Sequence record: MG752970.1 | Reading direction: 5' to 3' (one strand) | DNA: 64,000 bases | Shown here: positions 30,580 to 61,708 of the stretch, one piece after another | How the letters are laid out: the number at the start of each line of letters is the position of its first letter | Position numbering within the stretch: position 1 is the stretch's first letter | Notes under the pieces: model-generated | The model's input: only the letters and a program-made list of their open reading frames with translations | What the model was told of the DNA's origin: nothing | The model's database searches: none | Made by a program: the position numbers and the translations under genes

Positions 30580-31296
30580 ATGAAGCTTCAAGAAATTATG
30601 AGAGATGGTCCTGAACTGTTCAAGCAGAAAATGCAGACCATTAGCAAAGTAGATGCAGCCATGACACAATGGATTTATGATCATGTCACATATATCGACG
30701 CATCTGATGGGAGCGATGTGGCGCGGGATAATGTTAGAGTCAAAGATGGGATTATATACTTTGAAAACGTGAAACCCACCGACTGGGGTTTCAATATCCA
30801 AAATCCAGAGAATACAAAGCATGTGCACATGACGATTGATATGAGAGGAGCCAAATTAGATCCGCCTCTTCCTATCATTCACAATGATTCTATCTTCGTT
30901 GACGATGATGTTTTGATAGTTAACTCCATCATTGATGACTGGTCAAAACTTCCAATTTTAGAAGAACATCAAAACTACGATGTTCAGTTTGCCGTCGTTG
31001 GAAATAAAACCATCATCAAGTCGTGGAATGGTTTGAGAAAATATGATCTACACCGTCTGCATTTCAATTGGGAATCAAATGAATCTGTAAAAATAGAATG
31101 CGGTCTTCTCGAGCTTGTGGATTTCCCAAAGCATGCATTTTTTAGTTATTCAGCATACTCCAACAATACAGATCCTCTAGCCCATCAACTTGACGCAGCA
31201 TTTGAGTTTCTTGCGCAATTAAGACGTGATGGTGGAGATGTCTTTGAATTCCAGGAATATCTAATAGATCATGGACTTGAGCAATTTGCTAGGTGA
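30580..31296 (+). CDS. FDxQDW-domain family protein, long form (dispersed copy)
   Basis: Probable start MKLQEI at 30580 (AGGAGA RBS, GATAAATA at 30552); C-terminal DVFEFQEYLIDHG. Confidence 0.75.
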   Translation: MKLQEIMRDGPELFKQKMQTISKVDAAMTQWIYDHVTYIDASDGSDVARDNVRVKDGIIYFENVKPTDWGFNIQNPENTKHVHMTIDMRGAKLDPPLPIIHNDSIFVDDDVLIVNSIIDDWSKLPILEEHQNYDVQFAVVGNKTIIKSWNGLRKYDLHRLHFNWESNESVKIECGLLELVDFPKHAFFSYSAYSNNTDPLAHQLDAAFEFLAQLRRDGGDVFEFQEYLIDHGLEQFAR

Positions 31297-40331: not shown

Positions 40332-41087
40332 TTAGTTAACGTACCAATGATCCAGGTGTGACTTGATGTAGTTCATTGAGTGAATACCTGGATCAAGCGT
40401 CTTCATTCCGCTTCCTTTCATTCTCTGAATGGTGCGAGCACCTATAGGATTCTCAACACCTGAAGTAAAGAAGCTACTCATTCTGCGATATGCAGCCTGA
40501 ATTGCTGAATCAGTTAATTCACCATCATTGTTATCTACTTCAAGGAATGTATGGAACTTTGCCTTGTAGTATTTTTTGTTAGCATCTGCTAAAGCATAAA
40601 CCGAACGAATGAATTGCTCATTCACGTGTCTGTCTCTAGTAGCAGCTCTCTTTAACGCAGTTTCAATATCAGTATTGATCCACACCATCGCGGTGTCATA
40701 TCCGAATGATTCAAGGATACCATTTCTAGCAACCAATGCTTCAATATTGGAGCTTGTGCTATCAATGAAAAGAGGAAGCATGCCGTTAATATACTGCGCC
40801 AACTGTTCTTTGGTTATTTGCTTCGCCTTATCGAGGAAGAAATTCTGAAATGATTCCTTTTCCTGCTCAAAACTTTGGCCTATAGAAATACCAGCATGCT
40901 TTGAAAGAAATTCAAATGCAATGTCAGTGTTTACTATGCGTGGTGAAATAGAACCAGATGAAAGAGCTTTAGACACATATGTCTTGCCTGCACCGGGAGT
41001 ACCAGCAAAGAATACAGATTTGAAAATTCCACGATCTTCAATGCCTTCTAACAGGTATTCTTTAAATGTTGTCATGGCATACCCCAC
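40332..41087 (-). CDS. P-loop kinase (zeta/AAA_33-like) with capsid-targeting-like N-terminus
   Basis: MTTFKEYLLE; GTPGAGKT; IDST; ALKRAATRDR. Confidence 0.72.
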   Translation of the reverse strand: MGYAMTTFKEYLLEGIEDRGIFKSVFFAGTPGAGKTYVSKALSSGSISPRIVNTDIAFEFLSKHAGISIGQSFEQEKESFQNFFLDKAKQITKEQLAQYINGMLPLFIDSTSSNIEALVARNGILESFGYDTAMVWINTDIETALKRAATRDRHVNEQFIRSVYALADANKKYYKAKFHTFLEVDNNDGELTDSAIQAAYRRMSSFFTSGVENPIGARTIQRMKGSGMKTLDPGIHSMNYIKSHLDHWYVN

Positions 41088-41797
41088 AATTCTATCTTCA
41101 GTTGATGAATGAAGCTTGATTCTTTAGATGAAAATCTTCGATTCTTACCTGCATTGATAGCGTAATATTCATCAGTCAACAAATAAATTTCGTGCTTACC
41201 ATGGAAAGGATTGCTTGATTCATCGTAATGCTGCTCTAAAACATTTTTAAGCTCGCTGACCATGTATTCGAATTCGTCTGGATCTAAAATGTTTTGTGCT
41301 GCTTGTAGAGGTACCTGCTGAATCTGAGAATTTTGTTTCATCAATCTATTCCACACAGCCTCTACATGTATAAATGAATCATAAACGTCTTCATCCCACA
41401 GCATATCGTATGGACCAATAGGGAATACAATGTACAAACTGCCACTATTTCCGGCATATTCCATTGCTTGCTCACGTTGATTGGTGGTGAACACCGCTCT
41501 ATCGCGCGCGCCCTTTATACCAGTTTTGTCTTCAATGATTTCATTCCACAAATCGTGCAACCATTGTGGTGAATCAGTAGGAATTCTGTTCTTTGCTGCT
41601 GCAAACCGATGCATGTCACCGAACTCGTCGTTAAATTCGGCTCTTATTCCTCTGTAAAGAAAATTACCGGATTGCGAGTCGCGCAAATATTCTTGGCAAT
41701 CCCGCTTGATAAGCTTAGAGATTGCCGAAAGTTTATTCATGTCATCTACATCGACGACAGGAGTTTCAGTTAAAAATTGCTTGAACGTTTGATTCAT
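41072..41797 (-). CDS. Putative ADP-ribosyltransferase-fold protein with capsid-targeting-like N-terminus
   Basis: MNQTFKQFLTE; LYRG, FTTN, HEIYL (R-S/T-E triad pattern). Confidence 0.5.
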   Translation of the reverse strand: MNQTFKQFLTETPVVDVDDMNKLSAISKLIKRDCQEYLRDSQSGNFLYRGIRAEFNDEFGDMHRFAAAKNRIPTDSPQWLHDLWNEIIEDKTGIKGARDRAVFTTNQREQAMEYAGNSGSLYIVFPIGPYDMLWDEDVYDSFIHVEAVWNRLMKQNSQIQQVPLQAAQNILDPDEFEYMVSELKNVLEQHYDESSNPFHGKHEIYLLTDEYYAINAGKNRRFSSKESSFIHQLKIELWGMP

Positions 41798-42816: not shown

Positions 42817-43473
42817 TTAACCTTTGGCTGCAGCCATGAGAGCATTTGCCGCTTTCATTGCCTTGTTCTGAGCTCTACGAACTTTACCAAAACACTCTTT
42901 AATTTTGTGTGCAACTTGCTTGACTAGATCCATAATGTTGGCTTCATCTAGAGGGCCGTCTGATACCACTCCCTTAACATGTGCAAGCATAGAAATCAAC
43001 TCATCATTTGACATAACCTTGATGTCTGATGCGAGCTTTGCTAGCTTAGGATCAATCAGATTCAATGACTTCTTTGTATCGCTTGTAGTCATTGCTTCTT
43101 TATACTCTTCAAGAACCTTTACTTGTTCTTCATTGACAAGCTCCAATGCTCTTGCATAAATTTTAGAATATGCTACGCCTGTTGTCTTGCGGCTTTTAAA
43201 CTCCAGCATTGCGTTCTTTACCAATAGCGTTTTTGATTCTTCCTTCTCAACAACTGGAAGTAGAATCGATTCTAGCTCAGTTGAACGCGCTGCTATTTTC
43301 TTGGTGAGAGCCGTAAGAACTTCTGTTTGAGCTTGAAGAAGCTTCCATTCTTCTGTAAGCTTCGCAATTTCTTTCTTAGTAAGCTTAAGCTCCTTAGCTT
43401 CTTCTGCTTCCTTAGCTGTCAGCTCATCCTTTTTCTTGGCTGCAGCTTCCATTAGAAACTGTTTGAGTCTCAT
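42817..43473 (-). CDS. Helical hypothetical protein, possible internal head protein
   Basis: MRLKQFLME N-terminus; K/E/A-rich. Confidence 0.6.
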   Translation of the reverse strand: MRLKQFLMEAAAKKKDELTAKEAEEAKELKLTKKEIAKLTEEWKLLQAQTEVLTALTKKIAARSTELESILLPVVEKEESKTLLVKNAMLEFKSRKTTGVAYSKIYARALELVNEEQVKVLEEYKEAMTTSDTKKSLNLIDPKLAKLASDIKVMSNDELISMLAHVKGVVSDGPLDEANIMDLVKQVAHKIKECFGKVRRAQNKAMKAANALMAAAKG

Positions 43474-47060: not shown

Positions 47061-47521
47061 ATAACAGGTTCTGCTTGTGCAGCCGCATCGTGAAGTATCT
47101 TCACGTTAATAATGAAATTGTTGGTACCTACTATGTCATACACTGTCTCACCAACTTTAATTCCTTTGATGAGATTGTTGGGTGAGATGCAAGCAGTAGT
47201 TTGAAAATGATTCTCTCTGATATCAGGAGTGCGATGAGTATGAGGCTTGACACCAATACCAGGAGGAACGCAATATACGAGCATGAAGTCAAGATACTCC
47301 AGACCCAGTGCTTCAACAACTCTCATTGGAAGATCATTTTCTAATTCATGCGGCTCGTATACGTTTCGATTCCTGGCGGCTGCTCCCAGATCTTTACCGG
47401 AGAAATTAACTGCTATGAGAGGTGAATCACAAGAAGGATCTTTCTTTCCCACTAGACCTTTGAAGTAATCGAATTCTGATTGGTTAAACTCGATTGCAAT
47501 TGGATTTCGAAGCACTAACAT
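47018..47521 (-). CDS. Cupin/2OG-Fe(II) oxygenase-like protein
   Basis: PPG..VKPHTH and distal LHDA metal-ligand pattern. Confidence 0.5.
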   Translation of the reverse strand: MLVLRNPIAIEFNQSEFDYFKGLVGKKDPSCDSPLIAVNFSGKDLGAAARNRNVYEPHELENDLPMRVVEALGLEYLDFMLVYCVPPGIGVKPHTHRTPDIRENHFQTTACISPNNLIKGIKVGETVYDIVGTNNFIINVKILHDAAAQAEPVIWMPCYGGRLKCNY

Positions 47522-47522
47522 A

Positions 47523-48137
47523 TTAATTCAAGACCGTAATGTTGCGGTCAACAAACCATTCTTGGAGTTCAAACACCGAATCAAAATCAATTATCTTCGT
47601 TCCACCTAGTTCTATGATACGAATCTTCCCTGTATTTACGTCCTTGAATACTCGATAACCGGTTTTATCTTCATCGAAATTAATTCTGAATCTGTATTTG
47701 GTATCTAGCATTCGATACACATCGTCAACATGCAAACTGCAGTTTGACATGTAAATTTCGGTTTTATCTGATGGAAGCTCTTCCAAATAATCAATGAACT
47801 TAGGAATGTCAAGAATGCTTTTACGAATGTAAATTCCACCATTGATTTTCTTGGGTAACGATGAAAAATCCAAAATAGAAATCTGTCGTATACTAAGTTC
47901 AAAGCACTCAAGCACATCAAATGGAGCAGGTTTAAGCACATCGTACGCAATTCCAGAACCATATCTAATCACTCTTCCTGGAAAACCAATGGCATTATGA
48001 TCCTTAAGCTGCTTCTTAATGCTATCCCACTCCATATCCGTCACATCATTGTCTCTAAGATCCAGAATCTGTATGTTGTGAGCAATCCAGTCCAATTGTT
48101 CCTGCAATTTGTCGGTTGCAATTTCTAATAGCTTCAT
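47523..48137 (-). CDS. FDxQDW-domain family protein, long form (dispersed copy)
   Basis: MKLLEI; LRR-like ILDFSSLPKKI; SVFELQEWFVDR; TAAATA at 48158-48163. Confidence 0.75.
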   Translation of the reverse strand: MKLLEIATDKLQEQLDWIAHNIQILDLRDNDVTDMEWDSIKKQLKDHNAIGFPGRVIRYGSGIAYDVLKPAPFDVLECFELSIRQISILDFSSLPKKINGGIYIRKSILDIPKFIDYLEELPSDKTEIYMSNCSLHVDDVYRMLDTKYRFRINFDEDKTGYRVFKDVNTGKIRIIELGGTKIIDFDSVFELQEWFVDRNITVLN

Positions 48138-48206
48138 AACTATCCTTATGTTTGAAATATTTATGCCATGATTAGACTGTAAATATTCCTACTAAGAGGA
48201 ATTAAA

Positions 48207-48665: not shown

Positions 48666-49052
48666 TTATAATCGTTTTTCAATAGCAGCTTCTAAGTCAT
48701 TATCAATAATATATTGCTGCAGATCGAAAACATTGTCATATACATAGACTGGTCGCACTCCTTTGTATATATAACCCACGCCAGCACTTCCATTTATGAA
48801 GATTTTTTCTTGATAGTAATTAAAACTGCATGTAATAGTAATATGGCGCGGCGCGATAGAGATCAAATCACACACAAAGTTTATATCTAATCCACTACAC
48901 CGCCTAAAAGTCACGATGAGAGATTTGCGGAGATTATTTTCAAGATACCATTTAACACTTTCTTGATGAACTCTCATATTCTCGGACCATATTAGGTCCT
49001 TTGGTATGCGGTGCAGCATTGCTAGTCGTTCAGTATCACTGTATTCTTTCAT
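48666..49052 (-). CDS. FDxQDW-domain family protein, intermediate form
   Basis: C-terminal NVFDLQQYIIDND. Confidence 0.65.
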   Translation of the reverse strand: MKEYSDTERLAMLHRIPKDLIWSENMRVHQESVKWYLENNLRKSLIVTFRRCSGLDINFVCDLISIAPRHITITCSFNYYQEKIFINGSAGVGYIYKGVRPVYVYDNVFDLQQYIIDNDLEAAIEKRL

Positions 49053-50076: not shown

Positions 50077-50772
50077 ATGACAACCACAGTTACCACAACT
50101 ACAGTAACGACTGTAACAACTACGACTACAACCCCAACAGATGTAGTAGCTAGACTCGTGTTCATTCTAGATAGATCTGGATCCATGCAGGACGTCAAGT
50201 CTGACGCAATCGGTGGATTCAATTCATTCGTTGAGTCCCAAAAGAAGGTGGAAGGTGAAGCCACGATGACTCTCGTTCTGTTCGATGACGTCATCACCAC
50301 TGTACATGATCGGCTGAACCTCTCAGAGGTTCCTACACTTACTGATGAGGTCTTCATTCCTCGTGGTATGACTGCTTTATTCGATGCTGTAGGCAGAACC
50401 ATTGCCGACATTAAGGCTACCAAGCAGCCAAATGAAAAGGTCATCCTCGCCATCCTTACAGATGGATACGAGAATGCTTCCAAAGAATATGGTGGTCAGC
50501 AAGTCGCAGACCTCATTAAGGAAGTTGAAGATGAGATGGGTTGGGAAGTTCTGTTCCTCGGTGCGAACATTGATGTCACTAAGATTGCTCAGCAGCTCAA
50601 TATTAAGGGCGGCAAGTTCGCAACATTTGCAGCATCTAGCGCAGGTATGGACGGCGCAACGAAGGCTGTAGATGCAGCATTTACAAATTACCGCAATGCT
50701 GCATATTCTGGAGCTGCTGCAGCAGCCGATTTTGATCTACAAGACGCTTATACTTCAAACGTGACTAAGTAA
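50077..50772 (+). CDS. von Willebrand factor A domain protein with Thr/Val-rich N-terminus
   Basis: ILDRSGSM MIDAS, GMTALFDA, LTDGYEN, FLGAN. Confidence 0.88.
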   Translation: MTTTVTTTTVTTVTTTTTTPTDVVARLVFILDRSGSMQDVKSDAIGGFNSFVESQKKVEGEATMTLVLFDDVITTVHDRLNLSEVPTLTDEVFIPRGMTALFDAVGRTIADIKATKQPNEKVILAILTDGYENASKEYGGQQVADLIKEVEDEMGWEVLFLGANIDVTKIAQQLNIKGGKFATFAASSAGMDGATKAVDAAFTNYRNAAYSGAAAAADFDLQDAYTSNVTK

Positions 50773-51337: not shown

Positions 51338-51363
51338 AAAAGGAGACCTTAAGGTCTCCTTTT
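51338..51363. terminator. Bidirectional terminator, perfect palindrome
   Basis: aaaaggagaccttaaggtctcctttt between convergent genes. Confidence 0.8.
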
Positions 51364-51944
51364 TATTGCTTAAATTTTGCTGGATCTTTATCGTATCCGT
51401 TTGATATCATAAAATCCTGGAATTCAAACACATCATCTAGCATAATTTCCGTAACACCCCACATGACATGAATTCCTGCTAGAGTTGCATTCACTATACA
51501 TTTCGTTCCAACGCTGTACACAAATCTGTCTAGATCCATTTGAAGCATTTTTTCAACATCATTGAATGACAGCATCGTGTGGTGGGTGTCTACAAAATTC
51601 ACATGATGTGATTCAACTAATGTTGACAGATCGGTGTCTAGTTCGCAGTTATATAGACTTAGATTCCCAATCGATTTGAAAATATTAAAAGAAGAAATTT
51701 TTCGGCGATGGATTGTGAGTCCATTAAGATCACTAAAAGTAATTGGTGAATCTAATAACTTAAGAGCATTCTTTGTCTGTCCTATGCCAACATGTATATT
51801 GGATGGCAATACCAATTCAGATGCAATCAGATACTTAGTCAGCTCAGCTCCTAGAACTGATTTCTGTTTTTCCAAATCCCAGGCACTTAGATTCTGTTCT
51901 ATCCAATCGACTAAAATATCTCTTTTAATTTCTGAAAGCTTCAT
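51363..51944 (-). CDS. FDxQDW-domain family, long form, array member 11
   Basis: MKLSEI; IGNLSLYNCEL; DVFEFQDFMISNG. Confidence 0.8.
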   Translation of the reverse strand: MKLSEIKRDILVDWIEQNLSAWDLEKQKSVLGAELTKYLIASELVLPSNIHVGIGQTKNALKLLDSPITFSDLNGLTIHRRKISSFNIFKSIGNLSLYNCELDTDLSTLVESHHVNFVDTHHTMLSFNDVEKMLQMDLDRFVYSVGTKCIVNATLAGIHVMWGVTEIMLDDVFEFQDFMISNGYDKDPAKFKQ

Positions 51945-51947
51945 TCA

Positions 51948-52556
51948 TTAGCCTCTCTTGAAGCAGTCCACACGATCGAACCACTCATTATCGATAAGCC
52001 ATTCTTGAAATTCAAACTCATCATTGAATTTTTCTTGCAAAGAATGACGGTATTCTTCATCAGGATACTCAGCAATTATAACATCACCTGATCTATTAAT
52101 GATTAGATCTACAGTAGAATACACCCATTGTCTAAGATTAGATCCTAGTAGCACGCCAAAATCTTCAAACGTTAGCAATGTGCTTTCAAATCTAACATCC
52201 CTACAAGCATGAATGGCCCATTGAACAAGTGCGCCATCATACGTGCAGTACAAAATTTCTGCTCTATCCTGAACAACCTTTGGCAGTTTACTAATACCTT
52301 CGGCAGTCAGATGAAATGAATTCAATCTCAGAATTGACACTGTATTCATGCCGATTGGTGGCGACCAAGTCGTAGGGTTATCAAAGCTTCCAGTAAAGTT
52401 AGCAGTCAATCCAGTAGCATCTAACACTGAATTCTTGATGCGTGAGATCCATTCTTGACCACCAGTCGCATCACTTGTTAAATACCCCAACTTTCTAAAC
52501 TCTGCGGCTATCTGTTGATCACTCATGCCTTCACTCAACCATTTCTTAAATCTCAT
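51948..52556 (-). CDS. FDxQDW-domain family, long form, array member 10
   Basis: MRFKKWLSE; ISKLPKV; EFEFQEWLIDNE. Confidence 0.8.
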   Translation of the reverse strand: MRFKKWLSEGMSDQQIAAEFRKLGYLTSDATGGQEWISRIKNSVLDATGLTANFTGSFDNPTTWSPPIGMNTVSILRLNSFHLTAEGISKLPKVVQDRAEILYCTYDGALVQWAIHACRDVRFESTLLTFEDFGVLLGSNLRQWVYSTVDLIINRSGDVIIAEYPDEEYRHSLQEKFNDEFEFQEWLIDNEWFDRVDCFKRG

Positions 52557-52602
52557 ATTACGCCTTAAAATTTACCAATCGCATTAGTAGTCCAATATTT
52601 TC

Positions 52603-53223
52603 TCATTCACTAATCTCAAAGTAAGTAGAATTATCCGACACACCGAGATTAATTAATTCATTCTGCAAATCAAACACGTCTAGACCAGACAGGTTATGTG
52701 TGTCATATTTTAATCTGAGTCCTTTCGACTCTGTATTTGATATCTCGAAATTCTTTCCTATAGAGTATATCACTTTAGTTCCTGAAGATATCAAATCTAT
52801 TAGATCATTCTCACGTATTTTGGTATCGCCAAGCAATATTTTCTTTCTACCCTTTAGGTAATCCAAATAAAGACCCGTTAATTTACAATCATAAATGAAC
52901 AATTCAATAGGATTTCCAAGCAGTGATATGTTGTTTATGGTGAAACCTCTTACGAAGACGGTCTCTATATCCGGTAGTGTGTTAGGAATATTAAAAGGAG
53001 TTCCCTTTCTTTTGGAATACAGCTCAAGATATGTAAGATCTTTTTGAGTTGTGCGTCCTGCCAGAACCTCATGCGCATTATAATTGCCGCCCAAATATGG
53101 ACCAAAACCCTTTCCTTCAAATCTATATCTCTTCAAGCTGTCAACAAAGTCAGCCCACTGGCGCATGATGTCATCATTCTTTATTTCACTCAACCTCATA
53201 TTATGCCTTGAAGAGTTTATCAT
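52603..53223 (-). CDS. FDxQDW-domain family, long form, array member 9
   Basis: Internal MRLSEI; IELFIYDCKL; DVFDLQNELINLG. Confidence 0.8.
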   Translation of the reverse strand: MINSSRHNMRLSEIKNDDIMRQWADFVDSLKRYRFEGKGFGPYLGGNYNAHEVLAGRTTQKDLTYLELYSKRKGTPFNIPNTLPDIETVFVRGFTINNISLLGNPIELFIYDCKLTGLYLDYLKGRKKILLGDTKIRENDLIDLISSGTKVIYSIGKNFEISNTESKGLRLKYDTHNLSGLDVFDLQNELINLGVSDNSTYFEISE

Positions 53224-53791
53224 GCAGATCTTTTTCGATCAAATAATTCTGAAATTCAAACACATCACTGGTTGTCCAGCCCGCAGGATTACTAGAACCT
53301 GTATCATGTACAAAATAATTTGACTCATCAAAACCAATCAGGATACCATTTACATTGTACATAAGATCTATCTGAGCTTCAAGCAGTTTGTCAAACTCAG
53401 CGAGACTTAGCTTTGAATCATGCAGCTCTACATACTTCACATTAGCTGTAACATAATCAGCAAACCCTGGTGCCACCTTGCACTTACCAATAACAAGCTC
53501 ATTTACTTTAGGCCAATCACCGTAGTTTCCTATTTCTGATCCACGAGTGACAGATAGTTGATTAAGCTTATCGAATTTGACAGGCCATTTTAGGAGTGAT
53601 ATGTTCTTCTTAGCATCAAGAATCCAGGTCTCAGTATCAACTGTGAGTTTACCAGCTTTCAGCATCTTGTGCGAAATAAAATTAATATGATCGATTTCAC
53701 CGGTGTCATCGGCTATCGCAAAGTTGGCAAACAACCAATCAATTAACGCATCATCTCTTTTTGCTGGAGATAGTATCTCATCTAGTTTCAT
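53201..53791 (-). CDS. FDxQDW-domain family, long form, array member 8
   Basis: MKLDEI; WPKVNELVIGKCKV; DVFEFQNYLIEKD. Confidence 0.8.
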   Translation of the reverse strand: MKLDEILSPAKRDDALIDWLFANFAIADDTGEIDHINFISHKMLKAGKLTVDTETWILDAKKNISLLKWPVKFDKLNQLSVTRGSEIGNYGDWPKVNELVIGKCKVAPGFADYVTANVKYVELHDSKLSLAEFDKLLEAQIDLMYNVNGILIGFDESNYFVHDTGSSNPAGWTTSDVFEFQNYLIEKDLHDKLFKA

Positions 53792-53800
53792 TTGATTCCC

Positions 53801-54403
53801 TTATTGAACGAAATAGCGTTCATCGTCTAACTGCATCTGCATAAGCGTGTCTTGCAAATCAAATACTGATTTAACCACTATGCGCTTAATAGAATTTGAT
53901 TTATTATCTCTTACTGATATTTCTAAAACATCGTACTTGTTGATGGTTAAATTAATTCCTCTATCACTGTCAGAGATAAAGTAACTAACTTCAAGCGGCC
54001 CAGATTCGATAATCAAGCACAAATCATTTAGTCTTATTTTAGAGTTTGACAGACGCAAGAGATCCTTGATATGAGACTTGGCATATTGTACTATTCCAGG
54101 TCCTAGGTTGCACAACAGAGCTCTAAACTCATCTACTATCGGCATCTTAGAATACTCATTCAATCTGCATGTCGTCATTTTCAGTGCAAAGAGCCTTGGT
54201 ATTCTACTAGGAAATTCAATAACCTCATCATGACCGTCCATGACTATTTGCGTTTCTGTTAATGAATATCCGGTATTCAGCCTACCGACAATTTCACCCG
54301 ATGTCAGATGGCCACCATAATGCTGATCGATTCCACTTACGTCATACTTATAAACGAATTCTTCCCATGCATTTTCGGTAGATCCTATCTCACGCAGCTT
54401 CAT
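53801..54403 (-). CDS. FDxQDW-domain family, long form, array member 7
   Basis: MKLREI; MPIVDEFRALLCNL; SVFDLQDTLMQM. Confidence 0.8.
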   Translation of the reverse strand: MKLREIGSTENAWEEFVYKYDVSGIDQHYGGHLTSGEIVGRLNTGYSLTETQIVMDGHDEVIEFPSRIPRLFALKMTTCRLNEYSKMPIVDEFRALLCNLGPGIVQYAKSHIKDLLRLSNSKIRLNDLCLIIESGPLEVSYFISDSDRGINLTINKYDVLEISVRDNKSNSIKRIVVKSVFDLQDTLMQMQLDDERYFVQ

Positions 54404-55044
54404 GGCTTGAATCCTTTACTTATTAGATCGTGTGACAGCAGATAGTCCTGTAGTTCGAAAGGATCATCAAACGCTATGTGAGTAACGTTATGAGGGTTTG
54501 TAGATTTCGATGAATCGATCGCGTTCGCGCTGTGTGATATTTTATATTTGTCGTTCACGTACATTACGGTTATAGAACCGGGACTGTAGTTAAATTCCTT
54601 TCCACTAGCAAGCATGAGCTCAAAATCTGCATATGATATCAGCGTGCCTCTGAGTACCCACTTACCAACATCCTTCGTTACCCATTCAGCAAACCCCTTG
54701 CGCACGTTGCAGTCTATTAACACCAGATGTTCTAGCTTAGGATAGTTCTGAAAGCCCTCTAGATAGCAATCCTCTAGCTGCATTCCAATTGCTTGTCCCA
54801 TCTTAACCGGAAAGGTAACAGTTCTGTTAGGAAAGTTTCTAGCATTCACTCGTATCGTCATGTGCTCTAGACCAACTAACTTTCCATTCCTGACTAAATG
54901 GCCGTAGTCTTTCTTCTGAATCGCCTGAGTTGTTCCTGAGTCTATGTTCGTAGATAGAACCAAATGATCTAACGTCCACTTTAGAAGTTCATAATCCTCC
55001 GAATCTTCTTTCAACCATTGCTTGAAGCTCATCTCTAATTCCAA
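54400..55044 (-). CDS. FDxQDW-domain family, long form, array member 6
   Basis: Internal MSFKQWLKE; YPKLEHLVLIDCNV; DPFELQDYLLSHD. Confidence 0.8.
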   Translation of the reverse strand: MELEMSFKQWLKEDSEDYELLKWTLDHLVLSTNIDSGTTQAIQKKDYGHLVRNGKLVGLEHMTIRVNARNFPNRTVTFPVKMGQAIGMQLEDCYLEGFQNYPKLEHLVLIDCNVRKGFAEWVTKDVGKWVLRGTLISYADFELMLASGKEFNYSPGSITVMYVNDKYKISHSANAIDSSKSTNPHNVTHIAFDDPFELQDYLLSHDLISKGFKP

Positions 55045-55056
55045 AAAGTTATTGTT

Positions 55057-55647
55057 CTATTTAAACCATTCGCTGGTATCCACGTTATCAATCAACCATT
55101 CCTGAGCATCAAACTCATCATCAAAGTACTGAATTCCATTATCATACGCTGATGGTCCCTGATATGAGACTCTACATTTATGTTTGATGTCGCTCACTAT
55201 TCTAAGCCAGTCGCCATCGATATTCACGTAGTAGGTAAAATCTATTACGGGCAGGAATGCTAATTCAATAACATCTCCAATTCGCAGCAATGAGTTAGTC
55301 ACACCAACCTGCTTCGCTATCTTATTCTTTATGTACTCAGCAAACCCATCTCCTAGGTTACACTTATCGACTGAAAAGATATCAGTAATAGGTAAATTAG
55401 TATAATCGTTAATCGTCAGTCGGTCCACATTCAGCTCATACAGGTATCTAATCCCATCCGGTAACCTCAACACCTCTCCGTTACCAGAAAAGGAAGCCGT
55501 ACAGTTACCAGTATTATCGTCAGCAGCCTCTTCTAGGAATTCATCTAAAGTGAGCTCCTTTGCATACGCACCGTTAGGCATCACGTATATAAATTCGGTG
55601 CGGATTCCATCAAATGCGTTTGACTTAGCAATCTCATTTAACTTCAT
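55057..55647 (-). CDS. FDxQDW-domain family, long form, array member 5
   Basis: MKLNEI; LPITDIFSVDKCNL; DEFDAQEWLIDN. Confidence 0.8.
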   Translation of the reverse strand: MKLNEIAKSNAFDGIRTEFIYVMPNGAYAKELTLDEFLEEAADDNTGNCTASFSGNGEVLRLPDGIRYLYELNVDRLTINDYTNLPITDIFSVDKCNLGDGFAEYIKNKIAKQVGVTNSLLRIGDVIELAFLPVIDFTYYVNIDGDWLRIVSDIKHKCRVSYQGPSAYDNGIQYFDDEFDAQEWLIDNVDTSEWFK

Positions 55648-56279
55648 TTGAAGTACTCCGATCCAGTAAAGCCGTTCTGGATCATCCAGTCCTGCATTTC
55701 AAAGACATCATCAAAGAACTGAAGTGCAGGAGCACCTCGGGCGTCAGCCAAGGGCGTCATCACCACGATCTTTGCGGTTTTAGAGTATCCCTTTTGCTGC
55801 ACCGCTTCACCCGCGGTAACTTTTAATATGGTGTTTCCTATATGATACTCTAGACTTCGAATGCCGCTTACGAGATGGTAGAAAATATCCTCCTTAATCT
55901 TCGTAGAATATGATCTTAAGGCTTGATCGCTACGAATGTTGTTCACAACCGAATCGGGTACCACGCAGTTCGTAAATTGATACCCATACACTGAATCAAA
56001 GGGGACGTCAGGAACTATGTAGTTAGCAACCGATAACCATCTTACTCTAGGTAGGGCGTACGGAAGTTCTAGCGGCGTCTGTGAATTAGGTTTACCATCT
56101 AAATGAACGGCAGCCTCTGACATTCTATCTTGATCGAGAAGCTTCAGCAAGCGTTCTCGTTGCTTGATGTATCCAGATCCAAAGTGCACCTGCGCGTTCT
56201 GCATCAACCAATCGCACAAGGCTTCATTATCCTGAGTTATTTCTTCTAGTTTCATAGCTGCGTAAAGAAGGTTTTCCAC
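55644..56279 (-). CDS. FDxQDW-domain family, long form, array member 4
   Basis: Internal MKLEEI; LPRVRWLSVANY; DVFEMQDWMIQNG. Confidence 0.8.
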   Translation of the reverse strand: MENLLYAAMKLEEITQDNEALCDWLMQNAQVHFGSGYIKQRERLLKLLDQDRMSEAAVHLDGKPNSQTPLELPYALPRVRWLSVANYIVPDVPFDSVYGYQFTNCVVPDSVVNNIRSDQALRSYSTKIKEDIFYHLVSGIRSLEYHIGNTILKVTAGEAVQQKGYSKTAKIVVMTPLADARGAPALQFFDDVFEMQDWMIQNGFTGSEYFK

Positions 56280-56839
56280 TTATCGGTTGACATCAAGTAA
56301 TCCTGTAGCTCAAATACGTCCGTGAGCTTGACATCAGGATTCTTTCCTTTAATCACATATTCATGACCGCTATACATCAGAAGTTCCTTTCCAGCTCTGA
56401 ACTCAAACATAACATCAGCATCTAGAATCTTCTCAAAGTCGTCCAGGTTTACGAGTGAATCTGAAACCGAAACCGTCGGTCTATTCTCCTGAACGTACTC
56501 TCCAAATCCCTTTGCAATGTAGCAGCGCTTCAGAAACAAGGCAGCAGTTTCAGGCCAGTTAGCATAGTTCTTGATAGTGACTTCCTTGAAATCGATGAAG
56601 CGTACCTCATAGATCTTTATTGGAAACTTAATCTCTATCTCGGTCTTCTTGTTCTCAATCCCACATTCTGTCAACCCGTAAATGACACCGTTTCCATGTA
56701 TCTTAGCTCGCAGTACGTCCTCAGTCATGGGCTGAATCATTCCCATATCGGTGAAACCAATCTTAAAGTTAGCAACCAGATCCTTGATCTCCTGCTCATA
56801 CTTATTCTGTATCTCTGTCAACCTCATGTACGACCTCAA
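56252..56839 (-). CDS. FDxQDW-domain family, long form, array member 3
   Basis: Internal MRLTEI; WPETAALFLKRCYI; DVFELQDYLMSTD. Confidence 0.8.
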   Translation of the reverse strand: MRSYMRLTEIQNKYEQEIKDLVANFKIGFTDMGMIQPMTEDVLRAKIHGNGVIYGLTECGIENKKTEIEIKFPIKIYEVRFIDFKEVTIKNYANWPETAALFLKRCYIAKGFGEYVQENRPTVSVSDSLVNLDDFEKILDADVMFEFRAGKELLMYSGHEYVIKGKNPDVKLTDVFELQDYLMSTDKWKTFFTQL

Positions 56840-56845
56840 ATAAAA

Positions 56846-57469
56846 TTACGCATCTAAAAATACCTCTGACGGCAGATTCAAACCTAGAATATATTCCTGC
56901 GCGTCGAAGATATCGGTAACCTGGGTTTGCTGAGAGGCTGCACCGTGCTGATTACGCCAAATTCGTATGTAACCGTCAGCCCCTTTCTTTACTTGAAATA
57001 TGATATCGTTCAACGTCCAGAAGTACTCAAGCATTCCCGTGTCAACCAACTCCAGAACCTCATGCATGCGCATAGGAACATTATTGAGTCTTGCAGAGTT
57101 AGAAACCTTGTTCTTAAGGTACTCGTATACAGCAGGACCGCAGTCACAGTTACGCATGATAAGGTCTTCAACGCTAGGCAGATACGAAAAATCCTGTATT
57201 CTGAATTTCTGCAGAGTAAGTTCCCTTAGGGTTGGAATAGGTACCGGCATGTCAAACAGTTCCTTACCAGCAGTATTTCCAACTAGGGTTAGATTCGTAT
57301 AGTCTAAATCACTCAAATTCTGAATTCGGCGCAGTATGAGCCTAATCTCATTCTCGTCCAGCGGGTCCTTACTTACTTGACCCTTCCTACAGTGATCCAT
57401 AAACCAGTCAAAAATCTCTTCACTCTCATCTTCTCTTATCTCCGTCAACCTCATTTTCCCATTCCCCAA
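56846..57469 (-). CDS. FDxQDW-domain family, long form, array member 2
   Basis: Internal MRLTEI; LRELTLQKFRIQDFSYLPSVEDLIMRNC; DIFDAQEYILGLN. Confidence 0.8.
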   Translation of the reverse strand: MGNGKMRLTEIREDESEEIFDWFMDHCRKGQVSKDPLDENEIRLILRRIQNLSDLDYTNLTLVGNTAGKELFDMPVPIPTLRELTLQKFRIQDFSYLPSVEDLIMRNCDCGPAVYEYLKNKVSNSARLNNVPMRMHEVLELVDTGMLEYFWTLNDIIFQVKKGADGYIRIWRNQHGAASQQTQVTDIFDAQEYILGLNLPSEVFLDA

Positions 57470-57511
57470 TTCGAATAAAACTTAAAACCTACCAGATCTT
57501 CCCGGATAAAA

Positions 57512-58072
57512 TCACTGAGAAAAGAACTTCTTCCAGTTGTCATCAGACATCAAGTACTCTTGAAAGTCAAACACATCCCGAAACACCGCACCTGTCTCCC
57601 AGCCATCAAACGTGACATCGTAGTCAGAACCCCAATACGTGAGCTGACAATCCCCTCGTTTAATCTCAAACTGCTTTCCGCTTCCCAGTATTACATCAAA
57701 CTCAGATAACGGTATCACGCACTCCTCGATCTCAACCTCATCGACCTTCTCTGATATGTACTTTCCCAACCCATTCTCAAACTTAGTATTAAACAGACGC
57801 AGTCTCTCAGCCTTCGGCCAATTGAAATAATCTAGAATTCTGCAGTTTGCTAATGAAACCACTCTAACTGAATCTACTGGAAAGTAAAACCTAGCAAGCT
57901 TACCATTACTTCCTAATGTACACTCATGTACATCGGTTAATACGCCATCTTTTATTCTAGAAGCTATATCTGCTAAACTTAATACACCTGCATTCCGAGT
58001 TACAGTAAACGTTTCTTTAAGCTTTTTAGCTAACTGTTTACTATTCTGACTCTTGATTTCTCTTACAAGCAT
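57512..58072 (-). CDS. FDxQDW-domain family, long form, array member 1
   Basis: MLVREI; VRVVSLANCRILDYFNWPKAERLRL; DVFDFQEYLMSDD. Confidence 0.8.
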   Translation of the reverse strand: MLVREIKSQNSKQLAKKLKETFTVTRNAGVLSLADIASRIKDGVLTDVHECTLGSNGKLARFYFPVDSVRVVSLANCRILDYFNWPKAERLRLFNTKFENGLGKYISEKVDEVEIEECVIPLSEFDVILGSGKQFEIKRGDCQLTYWGSDYDVTFDGWETGAVFRDVFDFQEYLMSDDNWKKFFSQ

Positions 58073-58354
58073 CCTAAACCTTTATCCTTACCGAATAAAA
58101 CATTTTCATCTTTTATTTACTGTATCTTATATACCAGAATCCCTAATACATAAGCCGCGAAGCGGCCCCTACACTCCCCGGATGTTTCTATAGCTCAGAA
58201 ACATTCCCGATGTATATAAGAACCTACAAACTCTGGTCTCGCGGTCTATGGTATCACACCGTCTCAGCGCTCAGGCGATTCAAAACGGTCCCAAGCGAAT
58301 TCTAGAATGTATAAAACCTAGGTAAAGGATGGAAAGGATTTCGAAAATGGGCGT

Positions 58355-58362
58355 TATTTATA
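58355..58362 (-). promoter_or_regulatory. T4-type late promoter TATAAATA
   Basis: Exact motif pointing into the long-form array; second TAAATA at 58114-58119. Confidence 0.6.
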
Positions 58363-58744
58363 GGGAGAAAAAGTGAGGGTTGGATAACGTTTGGAAAGCA
58401 TCGGAAAACCTTGGATATGAGCGCGTAAAAACGAAGGCCTCACACTCACACAGGATAACACTCGGCCGTCTACAAACCATCCCCCTAATGCACATCTGTT
58501 CCTGTATGTACGAGGCCACTAATCCCGGAGAGTTTCGCCCAGAAAACTAAGGGGTCTGGAGGCATTTTGTGTATCGTTTCGATGATTTCATACCTCTGCA
58601 GACTTACCTGAGGTACTCAGAGATGATTCGTTATGCTTGTTGATGTGCACAGTATCGAAATGTAGTAGATGATCTGAGCATCGTCTGTATGTTTCGAGTG
58701 TTCCATATAGTGCCGGAACACTTTGCACACTATTCCATAGATAC

Positions 58745-58774
58745 ATTATACACTACTGGTTTCGAAATGTACAC
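58745..58774 (-). promoter_or_regulatory. Sigma70-like promoter TGTACA-17-TATAAT
   Basis: Perfect -10, 17-nt spacer; no convincing ORF downstream. Confidence 0.6.
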
Positions 58775-59017
58775 TTTAGGCACATTCTTTTCGAACTATG
58801 ATACAGAATTTCAACAATTATCAAACCCATGGCATATTGTTTCACAGAATTCCTAGATCATAGTCAAATATTCTACAGAATTTCGAACTAGGATCCCCTG
58901 TTACACTTTAAATTTCTACTATGTACAAAAGTATGGTACAATATTAATAATGGAAAAGGGACGTCCCTCGCCGGGCCCCTCCTTCTGGGTTCTTCTGAAT
59001 GTTTGGTATAGACCCAG

Positions 59018-59204: not shown

Positions 59205-59441
59205 TCAGTATGCGGAGAAGAAGTCGATCATCCATTCTTGAAAATCGAAGATGTCGTCCATGCAGACAGAGTATGTAACATATCTGTTAGGATGAACCTC
59301 GACATATTCATCGTGCAAAGTGATCTGAATTAGTCCGTTAATAAAGACCACAAAGCTGCTGGGAGCGACCACGTTCAGAGTCTTGGTTGTCAGAGCATGA
59401 CAATCAGTAACCACCTCCAAGATGTCAATGATCGTAATCAT
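59205..59441 (-). CDS. FDxQDW-domain family, stand-alone mini protein
   Basis: DIFDFQEWMIDFF. Confidence 0.75.
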   Translation of the reverse strand: MITIIDILEVVTDCHALTTKTLNVVAPSSFVVFINGLIQITLHDEYVEVHPNRYVTYSVCMDDIFDFQEWMIDFFSAY

Positions 59442-60324: not shown

Positions 60325-60552
60325 CTATAGACGGTTGGTGATGATCCAATCTTGAAGATGAAAGATGGACTTTAGGCTGAAGACTTTGTGAACTCGTTGA
60401 TCAAACAGAAAAATTTCGTCATACACGAAGATTCGAATCTTTAGCAGCGGAAGATCGATTGTTCTCTGGCGAGTATCTACACAGGTGTCTTCTGTTGGTA
60501 CTAGATCTACCAGACATTCCAACACGTCAATGAGAGCCTGATGCGTAGACAT
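60325..60552 (-). CDS. FDxQDW-domain family, stand-alone mini protein
   Basis: SIFHLQDWIITNRL. Confidence 0.75.
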   Translation of the reverse strand: MSTHQALIDVLECLVDLVPTEDTCVDTRQRTIDLPLLKIRIFVYDEIFLFDQRVHKVFSLKSIFHLQDWIITNRL

Positions 60553-60553
60553 T

Positions 60554-60784
60554 TCAGCAGAAGGTCGTAACTATCCAGTCCTGCAGATCGAACAGAGATT
60601 CAAAGCGCAGTGGTATATTCGTTCCCAATAGTTGACCATGATACGTAGTAATAGAATGTCCCTGGTTGTACAGCGTAAATGTTGGAAGCTCTACGTTTAG
60701 GCAATCGAGACTTGGTACTTCATACACAACCGATTTAGGTAGAAGATCCCGTACGCAGTCTGCAATTTCTGTTAAGCTGAACAT
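60554..60784 (-). CDS. FDxQDW-domain family, stand-alone mini protein
   Basis: SLFDLQDWIVTTFC. Confidence 0.8.
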   Translation of the reverse strand: MFSLTEIADCVRDLLPKSVVYEVPSLDCLNVELPTFTLYNQGHSITTYHGQLLGTNIPLRFESLFDLQDWIVTTFC

Positions 60785-61012
60785 TTATAGTAAATTGGTT
60801 ACTATCCAGTCCTGCAGATCGAAGAGAGACCTGAAGAGCACTGGATTCATCAATGATTGTCCATGAAACAGTGAAATGTGATTGTCATAAATGTACAGAC
60901 TCAACGGCGGAACATCTACACCCACCTTGTCCAGATTCGGTATCTCGTATACGATAGATTTAGGTAGAAGATCTCGTATACAGTCTGCAACCTCTTTAAC
61001 GGTGATATTCAT
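60785..61012 (-). CDS. FDxQDW-domain family, stand-alone mini protein
   Basis: SLFDLQDWIVTNLL. Confidence 0.8.
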   Translation of the reverse strand: MNITVKEVADCIRDLLPKSIVYEIPNLDKVGVDVPPLSLYIYDNHISLFHGQSLMNPVLFRSLFDLQDWIVTNLL

Positions 61013-61238
61013 CGCAATGGCTTATTACCCAGTCTTGAAGATCGAATAGTGATGATAGCATTTCGTGTTTCTGTAATCCCATATCACGCCAGTAGACCTG
61101 CACATTGTCGGCGCAAATGTAGATAATTAGTTCTGGACAACCTACATCTACACGTCTTAGATTCTCGAACTCATAGATGGCAGCACGTGGAAACAAATCC
61201 TGCATGCATTGACCGAGTTCCTTCACCGTACAGATCAT
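60996..61238 (-). CDS. FDxQDW-domain family, stand-alone mini protein
   Basis: SLFDLQDWVISHC. Confidence 0.8.
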   Translation of the reverse strand: MICTVKELGQCMQDLFPRAAIYEFENLRRVDVGCPELIIYICADNVQVYWRDMGLQKHEMLSSLFDLQDWVISHCDEYHR

Positions 61239-61471
61239 AACAGATTAGTAACCACCCAGTCTTGGAAATCAAACAGGTCTGAGAACGTTCGTGGTTCTCG
61301 AAATGGGATTGTGTTGTAAACCGAAATCAAACCATTCATCAAGAAGATGGTGATCGGAATTCCCTTGATCCACTGAGTTGCTGGAAGTCCTAGCATCATC
61401 GGAGTAGCAGCATTCCTAAACTTGTCACCAACGATGCTGGCTAGAACGTCGTTAATTTCGTCTGCTGTCAT
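61235..61471 (-). CDS. FDxQDW-domain family, stand-alone mini protein
   Basis: DLFDFQDWVVTNLL. Confidence 0.8.
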   Translation of the reverse strand: MTADEINDVLASIVGDKFRNAATPMMLGLPATQWIKGIPITIFLMNGLISVYNTIPFREPRTFSDLFDFQDWVVTNLL

Positions 61472-61474
61472 TTG

Positions 61475-61708
61475 CTACACCATGTTAGCTATCACCCAGT
61501 CCTGAAAGTCGAAGATGTCGGTAAAGATTGTACAGTGTCCGCGGACGCCGGCGTCATACACTCGAATTTGATGATCAACAAAAACAGAGAATGGACCCTT
61601 TTCAAACCAAATGCTTTTCGTGACGTCATTACTACCTTCGCCTAGGTATACCTTGTTCTTATTTCCAAGGGCATCTTTTAAGATACTAATAACTTCTTCG
61701 GGGTTCAT
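61475..61708 (-). CDS. FDxQDW-domain family, stand-alone mini protein
   Basis: DIFDFQDWVIANMV. Confidence 0.8.
   Translation of the reverse strand: MNPEEVISILKDALGNKNKVYLGEGSNDVTKSIWFEKGPFSVFVDHQIRVYDAGVRGHCTIFTDIFDFQDWVIANMV

Follow-up and report, generated by a model that had tools for sequence, protein, structure and literature searches.

A run of eleven similar genes in a jumbo phage raises the question of what a virus does with so many versions of one small protein. We analyzed a window of 64,000 nucleotides corresponding to bases 124001-188000 of the 344-kb genome of Ralstonia phage RsoM2USA (MG752970.1). The run occupies positions 51363-58072 of the window and comprises eleven minus-strand ORFs, which a preliminary description had read as a diversified repertoire of binders delivered with the genome. 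The ORFs are 100% identical to the annotated genes RsoM2USA_274-284, every one of which is labelled 'hypothetical'. None contains an internal stop, and the eleven paralogues can be aligned end to end, with pairwise identities of 15-30% (mean 22%). The tandem arrangement described earlier is thus real. Together, the eleven genes form a single operon-like block within a lineage-specific family whose members, about 50 in number, are small and acidic.

The first gene of the block, g284 (RsoM2USA_284; 57512-58072), encodes 186 residues and starts with MLVREI. It is followed on the same strand by g283 (56846-57454; 202 residues counted from the conserved MRLTEI start), g282 (56252-56827; 191 residues), g281 (55644-56255; 203 residues), g280 (55057-55647; 196 residues), g279 (54400-55032; 210 residues), g278 (53801-54403; 200 residues), g277 (53201-53791; 196 residues), g276 (52603-53223; 206 residues as annotated and 198 from the conserved MRLSEI start at 53199), g275 (51948-52556; 202 residues) and the final gene, g274 (51363-51944; 193 residues). 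The stop codons of g282, g281 and g279 overlap the start codons of g281, g280 and g278, respectively, as ATGA (56252-56255, 55644-55647 and 54400-54403), and two further junctions have spacers of 1 and 3 nt. The translational coupling claimed for the array is therefore present.

The genes of this block are genuine, but treating them as an eleven-gene array was too narrow a scope and understated the size of the family about four-fold. Using a family profile, and counting as a full-length member any match over at least 120 of the approximately 200 profile positions, we found 48 full-length members in the genome. These make up 8.4% of the DNA, and 45 of the 48 lie at 171-213 kb. The median length is 198 residues, and all members are acidic (pI 4.2-6.8). 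Each starts with an N-terminal tag of 6-10 residues, continues with a variable part made up of a helical cap and LRR-like repeats (two to four of them), and ends in a constant C-terminal module. The module is an alpha/beta unit of about 70 residues whose final helix carries an invariant F-x-x-Q, and it aligns to the last 72 residues in every member. A model of the stand-alone module had a pLDDT of 94.3, and the best match in a fold search with it had an E of 0.35. With no detectable structural relative, the 70-residue module is a candidate new domain.

The window contains several relatives of the array genes. RsoM2USA_265 (47523-48137, minus strand) is its twelfth full-length member, with an RTAAATA motif 27 nt upstream of the start. 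RsoM2USA_267 (48666-49052, minus strand), an ORF of 128 residues, has only the C-terminal module, and a plus-strand ORF of 238 residues (30580-31296) combines an MKLQEI start and the C-terminal motif with a different middle. Six tandem genes of 75-80 residues, RsoM2USA_288-293 (60325-61708, minus strand), each encode a stand-alone module, as does a seventh, RsoM2USA_285 (59205-59441, minus strand); none of these stand-alone genes carries an N-terminal tag. The C-terminal motif occurs in 21 ORFs of the window versus 0.47 in shuffled sequences, and M[KR]LxEI in 10 versus 0.06. Across 22 proteins, M1, F178, Q181 and F194 (g277 numbering) are invariant, and D176, P70 and C104 are conserved at 91-95%, in agreement with the conserved ends noted previously. 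Because codon choice is randomized at the synonymous sites beneath the conserved residues, the ends are conserved at the level of protein; gene conversion and an RNA-level signal are ruled out as the cause.

The family is confined to this lineage in the collections searched. No Pfam, PHROG or NCBIfam family, those of the T4 internal proteins included, matched any member tested. Two word-based protein searches returned almost nothing beyond the phage's own proteins, and tblastn with two members (one at E ≤ 0.001, one up to E = 5) against 50,697 phage records found RsoM2USA alone. A degenerate DNA pattern of the C-terminal motif matched 2 IMG/VR, 48 JGI and 42 GTDB loci; none contained a member as judged by HMM, and these were discarded as chance matches. 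In XacN1, whose portal protein is 42% identical, no member was found in the 215-265 kb scanned. The paper describing RsoM2USA does not mention a gene family, duplication or LRR (PMC8504454).

The assignment of the variable part to LRR proteins is supported as a likeness by profile and model comparisons. The pattern L-x-x-L-x-L-x-x-(N/C)-x-L appears as two clear units and one or two degenerate units per protein; in 22 proteins, Cys occupies the N/C position in 91% and Pro precedes the first unit in 91%. Curated LRR models gave no match at E ≤ 1 in 10 members or at E ≤ 0.05 in 31 members, and ORF89, a distant relative, matched LRR_4 at an E of 0.091 (13.5 bits versus a cut-off of 27). In the reverse search, of the family profile against 1.84 billion proteins, there were about 30 long multi-stretch matches with E values of 3.5e-11 to 8e-4, and 10 of the 10 that were checked are bona fide LRR proteins carrying Pfam LRR_4 or LRR_8. 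The matching region spans approximately positions 45-120 of the family profile, its single stretches being individually non-significant.

The AlphaFold model of g277 was confident overall (pLDDT 89.3, pTM 0.84), with a pLDDT of 63 for residues 1-10. It predicts regular strands at residues 75-82, 95-102, 118-124 and 142-147 with helices in between, a spacing of 20-24 residues. In a Foldseek search of the PDB with this model, LRR domains were the commonest recognizable fold among the top matches, at a best E of 0.074 and TM scores of 0.36-0.43. The best matches in sequence and fold, albeit weak, were short bacterial and eukaryotic LRR domains, namely those of ANP32A, dynein light chain 1 and Listeria internalin-type proteins (E 0.07-1.5, non-significant). 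About 100 residues aligned with the ANP32A LRR at a probability of 0.94 and an rmsd of 3.2 Å, with a non-significant E, and PDB profile matches were to Lmo2470 and internalin H. Unlike the short LRR domains, the family has only two clear and one or two degenerate repeats, and its N-terminal helix and C-terminal module have no counterpart in them. The earlier term 'LRR-like' thus stands on the reverse search and the model, but neither curated LRR models nor a significant fold match bears it out. The variable part may form a curved solenoid with a parallel beta-sheet, given the spacing of the modelled strands and the non-significant fold matches above.

Comparison with L002, a metagenomic relative, revealed both divergence and gene turnover. 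L002 also has an eleven-gene array, in which eight genes are collinear orthologues and three are unshared, as are three in RsoM2USA (g283, g278 and g276); it has a 23-member block in addition. The array orthologues are 46-78% identical, with g279 at 78%, versus 72-97% for most neighboring genes; three neighbors are at 41-55%. The dN of the family is 0.317, five times higher than the 0.060 of the neighbors, and omega is approximately 0.2 in every region, which shows the genes to be under constraint rather than pseudogenes. No region had a dN/dS above 1, at dS values of 1.3-1.9, close to saturation, and positive selection was accordingly not demonstrated. Orthologues are 77-80% identical at the two end motifs versus 49-57% elsewhere, and the LRR strands are slightly more variable than the rest (52% versus 59.5%). 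The middle therefore diverges faster than the ends, though with no dN/dS above 1, and the array differs between the two phages. Overall, the divergence and the unshared members support the description of a diversified repertoire.

The signals flanking the array were also evaluated. A perfect palindrome of 11 pairs with T runs on both sides (51338-51363) abuts the last stop codon on its 3' side and is 100% conserved in the relative, which confirms the terminator that had been proposed; it lies between convergent genes and is a two-way terminator. Upstream of the array is a non-coding leader of 0.9 kb (58073-58993, minus strand), 80% identical to that of the relative and without codon periodicity; it contained no Rfam family and no tRNA, and its folding z-score was -0.63. 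Late promoters had been placed at two sites here. The first, an RTAAATA at 58114-58120 (minus strand), lies 48 nt upstream of the g284 start and is a candidate late-type promoter. The second, TATAAATA at 58355-58362 (minus strand), lies about 285 nt upstream of g284 within this conserved non-coding stretch and also matches RTAAATA. The exact TATAAATA is unenriched in the window (6 occurrences versus 3.4 expected), and none of its 17 copies genome-wide precedes structural genes, which rules out the exact T4-type sequence as the late promoter. RTAAATA fits instead: it occurs 150 times in 344 kb, and lies within 60 nt of the start at 17 of 26 heads of structural genes and 10 of 15 family heads, against a chance of 1.3% per such interval. 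From its position, we consider RTAAATA to be a candidate late promoter, although its presence at 5 of 23 heads within 1-36 kb speaks against such a role. The two promoters proposed earlier are confirmed in part, in that both sites share RTAAATA with the structural genes.

The N-termini provide a link to the virion. An FK-type tag is present in 12 ORFs versus 0.26 in shuffled sequences; its positions 4 and 7 are aromatic, position 8 is Leu and position 10 is Glu. It heads g275 and g279 as well as ORF89, ORF132 and ORF438; the last three are among the ten proteins that were matched to gel bands of the virion from mass spectrometry together with predicted mass (PMC8504454). The capsid-targeting sequence of T4 spans about 10 residues, with determinants of targeting at positions 4 and 7 and of processing at 8 and 10, the Glu being at the cut (PMC9026906). 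By the position rules printed in that review, as distinct from the letters of T4 propeptides, the same format is found in g275, g279 (one residue shorter), ORF61, 81, 89, 385, 403, 404 and others, ORF132 and ORF438 among them. Tagged ORF403 and ORF404 sit between neck and tail genes. The phage also has a T4-type prohead protease, ORF379, as annotated by its describers (PMC8504454).

The other nine array genes start with M[KR]LxEI or a close variant, which has only Leu-x-Glu at positions 3-5 and lacks the aromatic positions; cleavage there would therefore remove only five residues. Thus, the capsid-targeting-like N-termini attributed to the array as a whole apply to two of the eleven genes, g275 and g279. 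The neighboring ORF88, ORF89 and ORF90, a group carrying the FK-type tag, encode LRR-like proteins of greater length that share the C-terminal motif; of these, ORF89 is weakly linked to the family (HMM E 0.026; profile-profile probability 48%). As to the virion itself, ORF274-284 are not among the ten named proteins of the published analysis, which covered the strongest gel bands only (PMC8504454). Because that analysis was shallow, this absence is weak negative evidence.

Because the blocks lie behind the promoter-like motif of the virion genes, it is possible that the particle carries the family as a variable set of binding proteins. We tentatively favor this reading, at somewhat short of an even chance. 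The blocks would be transcribed late, alongside particle genes. In each member, the variable LRR part would bind a partner protein of its own, and the constant module and tag would link every member to one common partner, most likely the assembling head. The proteins would then ride in the particle and be released into the next cell, as T4 internal proteins are, where they may encounter variable host proteins such as defense factors. A more specific version is doubtful: that the capsid holds a combinatorial repertoire of some 50 diverged LRR-type binders, which a shared tag or module would load and which would leave the capsid along with the DNA, to counter many alternative host defense proteins.

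Among the closest precedents are the T4-type internal proteins IPI, IPII and IPIII, which are likewise small, unrelated or highly diverged, and share only a short N-terminal tag. Their rapid divergence has been read as an arms race with host defenses (PMC9026906, PMC3012670). However, RsoM2USA has about 50 homologous members rather than about three unrelated ones, and the family is further set apart by its LRR-like fold and by the constant module at the C-terminus. Most members have a different and shorter motif in place of the T4-format tag. Moreover, the members are acidic, whereas T4-type internal proteins are basic according to the review (PMC9026906), which is evidence against packaging.

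That acidity would suit proteins that are made late but remain in the cytoplasm, an alternative we consider possible, if on the unlikely side. The binders would act in the producing cell, where they might, for example, hold phage proteins or block host proteins of late-acting defense or abortive infection; the conserved ends would then be fold caps or the place where a cytoplasmic partner docks. The lack of any member in the published virion analysis, a commonest N-terminal motif without the positions that define the FK-type tag, and untagged stand-alone modules are all consistent with this, and fast change with turnover suits any arms-race binder. However, a cytoplasmic role leaves unexplained why g275, g279 and ORF88-90 share a tag with virion proteins and why the tag is swapped in one orthologue pair, the L002 orthologue of g281 carrying the other of the two tags. 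In addition, the first six residues are 77% conserved between orthologues yet fall in the part of the g277 model with the low pLDDT, so a signal is likelier there than a fold element.

It is improbable that the proteins decorate the exterior of the particle, the C-terminal module docking on or polymerizing with a virion component while the LRR part samples the host surface. Such a design has been proposed for Goslar (Chimalliviridae), in which about ten virion proteins, at very high copy numbers, share a DUF7941 module, combine it with variable binding domains, LRR included, and form a 'fiber cloud' (bioRxiv 10.64898/2026.04.21.720040). The late-type RTAAATA motif, the visible virion band of ORF89, the location of tagged ORF403 and ORF404 and a host range of three Ralstonia species (PMC8504454) would fit it. 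However, no Pfam family was found at E ≤ 0.05 in 31 members, and hence no DUF7941 if the library holds it; the module is a different one, C-terminal where that of Goslar is N-terminal. RsoM2USA belongs to a lineage related to XacN1 and Rak2-like phages, which, unlike Goslar, has no phage nucleus. Its micrographs were described with only a baseplate and 70-nm tail fibers, fifty distinct 22-kDa surface proteins would need numerous docking sites, and the T4 capsid-targeting format of the tag suggests a place inside the head.

Finally, it is very unlikely that the family has no repertoire function and is instead a bulk structural or scaffolding component, or a cassette that has duplicated neutrally or selfishly. 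Blocks of this kind arise most simply by tandem duplication, and both phages have exactly 11 genes in theirs. However, that equality conceals the unshared members, a structural protein required in bulk would have no use for 50 diverged versions and would be expected among the strong virion bands, and paralogues that are this divergent, all intact and at an omega of approximately 0.2 indicate that each copy is kept by selection.

Among eukaryotic viruses, the ankyrin-repeat/PRANC proteins of poxviruses and other repeat-protein families of giant viruses are also large, clustered and fast-evolving, and join a variable scaffold to a short constant C-terminal element, through which they dock on a common partner. 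In contrast to the poxvirus proteins, those of RsoM2USA have LRR-like rather than ankyrin repeats and no F-box-like sequence (no Pfam match), and the bacterial host has no ubiquitin system.

Approximately one tenth of the genes in this 344-kb phage encode variants of a single small protein whose ends are constant and whose middle is variable and of binder type. The candidate late promoter RTAAATA should aid the annotation of a poorly understood phage group, and the tag common to known virion proteins predicts further particle proteins in it. If members of the family are packaged, the T4 'internal protein' idea, which now covers a few unrelated proteins, would extend to a large repertoire of homologues, and the phage would offer a directly testable system for how a jumbo phage copes with diverse hosts. 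Were the more specific version true, the T4 internal-protein strategy would have been enlarged into the likeness of an innate-immune receptor repertoire, encoded by a bacterial virus.

The array (51363-58072, minus strand) was 100% identical to bases 175363-182072 of MG752970.1, the 343,806-bp genome of the jumbo myovirus Ralstonia phage RsoM2USA; the window thus spans bases 124001-188000 of the record. The array comprises eleven minus-strand ORFs, RsoM2USA_274-284 (g274-g284), all annotated as 'hypothetical protein', whose products align end to end at pairwise identities of 15-30%. The preliminary description of an eleven-gene array was thus borne out, as were its coupled stop and start codons (three ATGA overlaps, with spacers of 1 and 3 nt at two other junctions) and the terminator at the array's end, a perfect palindrome of 11 pairs (51338-51363).

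The family is much larger than this array. A profile built from the eleven genes revealed a twelfth full-length member at 47523-48137, and the C-terminal motif occurred in ten further ORFs of the window. The remainder of MG752970.1 was then scanned with the profile, each piece separately, taking as full-length any match over at least 120 of the ~200 profile positions. By this measure, the RsoM2USA genome holds 48 members, 45 of them within 171.5-213.4 kb of the record; RsoM2USA_301 to _336 form a nearly continuous run. Together the members occupy 29 kb, or 8.4% of the genome. The paper describing RsoM2USA mentions no gene family, duplication, or LRRs. Two window ORFs carry the C-terminal motif on other bodies: one (30580-31296, plus strand) starts with MKLQEI but differs from the family in its middle, and the other (48666-49052, minus strand) has a different or shorter middle. 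Their sequences suggest that end modules may have been shuffled onto other proteins. Separately, the protein at 50077-50772 (plus strand), 91% identical in the relative described below, has a Thr-rich N-terminus followed by a D-x-S-x-S stretch, which we take to resemble the von Willebrand A metal-site motif (candidate).

An AlphaFold2 model of g277, calculated from a 31-sequence alignment, was confident (pLDDT 89.3, pTM 0.84). Specifically, an N-terminal helix is followed by four strands with intervening helices (strands 75-82, 95-102, 118-124, and 142-147, spaced 20-24 residues apart), a small beta-meander, and a C-terminal helix bearing the invariant F-x-x-Q. Seven proteins of 75-80 residues, encoded on the minus strand by six tandem genes (RsoM2USA_288-293, 60325-61708) and by RsoM2USA_285 (59205-59441), align to the last 72 residues of every family member. 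The stand-alone module was modelled as a compact domain of helix, five-strand meander, and helix (pLDDT 94.3) and had no significant fold neighbour in the PDB (best E 0.35), making it a candidate new small domain. Based on these alignments and confident models, the family consists of a short tag, an LRR-like cap and repeats, and a constant module that also exists alone.

The LRR assignment held in part. Searched against 1.84 billion representatives, the family profile matched ~20 non-self full-length relatives and ~30 long proteins, the latter in several stretches each and at profile positions ~45-120; all ten of the long proteins checked were true LRR proteins by Pfam. LRR domains were the commonest recognisable fold among the top Foldseek matches (ANP32A, probability 0.94; dynein LC1, internalins, SKP2, LRRC8, and NLRP3), and the only PDB sequence matches were two Listeria LRR proteins (E 0.15 and 1.5). 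However, no member reached the threshold of a curated Pfam LRR model, and no fold match of the family model had E <0.07. 'LRR-like' is the fair term for the family, whose members have two clear repeats plus one or two that are degenerate.

Among 50,697 phage records, BLAST detected no family member in any other isolate, and the stretch of phage XacN1 that was scanned (215-265 kb) contained none. The BFVD search returned 14 unnamed entries and nothing else; these are probably RsoM2USA's own proteins. An uncultured close relative occurs in several ENA and Logan assemblies (contigs L002, 6908-13616, and L017), with unchanged gene order around the array. L002, a 28.5-kb metagenomic contig syntenic with the window, also has an eleven-gene block. 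The array is not invariant: eight collinear orthologues are 46-78% identical (mean 56%), and three members in each phage lack a counterpart. Identity is 72-97% for most of the non-family genes nearby and 41-55% for three of them; dN was 0.317 for the family versus 0.060 for neighbours. With dS near saturation, omega was ~0.2 for the family versus 0.06 for neighbours. No region of the family had an omega above 0.26. The reported constancy of the ends was recovered in the orthologues (identity 77% in the first six residues, 80% in the C-terminal helix, and 49-57% elsewhere). Codons under the conserved residues are chosen at random, so it is the protein on which conservation acts. The relative's second contig holds 23 members in 15 kb.

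In nine of the eleven array genes the start is M-[KR]-L-x-E-I or close to it. In its exact form this motif is present in 38 ORFs genome-wide, comprising 34 full-length members and four family-related ORFs. The other two, g275 and g279, carry a tag of the form M-x-F-K-x-W-L-x-E (FK-type), which also heads otherwise unrelated RsoM2USA proteins. The pattern M-x(0-3)-[FL]-K-x-[FWY]-[LI]-x(1-2)-E matched 12 ORFs versus 0.26 in shuffles, N-terminally in 11 of the 12, and a looser form added ORF90, ORF132, ORF337, and ORF438. Tagged genes adjoin the terminase (40332-41087, 41072-41797, and 42817-43473, minus strand); elsewhere in the record they are ORF61, 81, 89, 90, 132, 337, 385, 403, 404, and 438. 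ORF385 adjoins the capsid gene, and ORF403 and ORF404 lie between neck and tail genes. The tag is common to ORF89, ORF132, and ORF438; these are among the ten proteins to which the authors describing RsoM2USA, using mass spectrometry together with predicted mass, assigned bands of the virion gel (PMC8504454). According to a review of T4 head assembly, capsid targeting in T4 depends on residues 1-10 of IPIII, in which residues 4 and 7 mainly direct targeting, 8 and 10 direct processing, and cleavage follows Glu (PMC9026906). The FK-type tag resembles this sequence in format: positions 4 and 7 are aromatic, position 8 is Leu, and position 10 is Glu, the tag being one residue shorter in g275 and g279. 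Capsid-targeting-like N-termini, claimed for the whole array, are supported by format for g275 and g279 but not for the other nine. In the orthologue pair g281 and m5 (L002), the tag types are swapped, which hints from sequence that they may be interchangeable.

ORF88-90 (record 65163-67654, L015:25163-27654, minus strand) encode a trio of longer LRR-like proteins ending in a variant of the family C-terminal motif, also present in ORF61 (record 47317-48027, L015:7317-8027, plus strand). The link of ORF88-90 to the family is only suggestive. ORF61, ORF88, ORF89, and ORF90 form a small LRR-like group of 236-288 residues, and ORF89 is a visible band in the published virion gel (PMC8504454).

The exact TATAAATA was rejected as the late promoter, being rare and not upstream of structural genes. 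RTAAATA, which lies 48 nt from the start of g284 and 27 nt from that of RsoM2USA_265, has just 150 copies in the 344-kb genome, both strands counted. Of 26 heads of structural genes, 17 have it no more than 60 nt from their start codon, as do 10 of the 15 heads of family blocks and 5 of the 23 heads at 1-36 kb; 1.3% of such windows would carry it by chance. Examples in the window are 58114-58120 and 48158-48164 (minus strand). Judged by position, RTAAATA is a candidate late-type promoter of this phage group. The 0.9 kb upstream of the array (58073-58993) has no ORFs and shares 80% identity with the relative, rising to 90-94% at 58405-58704, and is better conserved than most coding DNA of the array; mismatches lack codon phase, and the segment had no Rfam match, no tRNA, and a folding z-score of -0.63.

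We tentatively favour binders that are made late and would most probably travel in the head. The proteins would be made from RTAAATA-headed blocks, with the variable LRR face binding and the constant part loading or docking. Counting against packaging, none of g274-g284 is among the published virion bands (PMC8504454), all family members are acidic (pI 4.2-6.8), and the aromatic positions are missing from the N-terminal motif that is most frequent. Binders made late that stay unpackaged in the cytoplasm are a possible, somewhat less likely reading. That the proteins decorate the outside of the particle and recognise the host, in the way proposed for the Goslar DUF7941 family, is doubtful. The least probable reading is neutral expansion or a structural role in bulk.

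Large eukaryotic viruses have multigene repeat-protein families with a constant docking end. The RsoM2USA family shares repeats and a constant end with these, its repeats being LRR-like. Tagged internal proteins were already known in T4 (PMC9026906). In the papers and libraries searched, no 50-member LRR-like phage family with its own C-terminal module is described. The uncultured relative (L002, L017) would lend itself to evolutionary comparison at finer scale, and the FK-type tag predicts further particle proteins.
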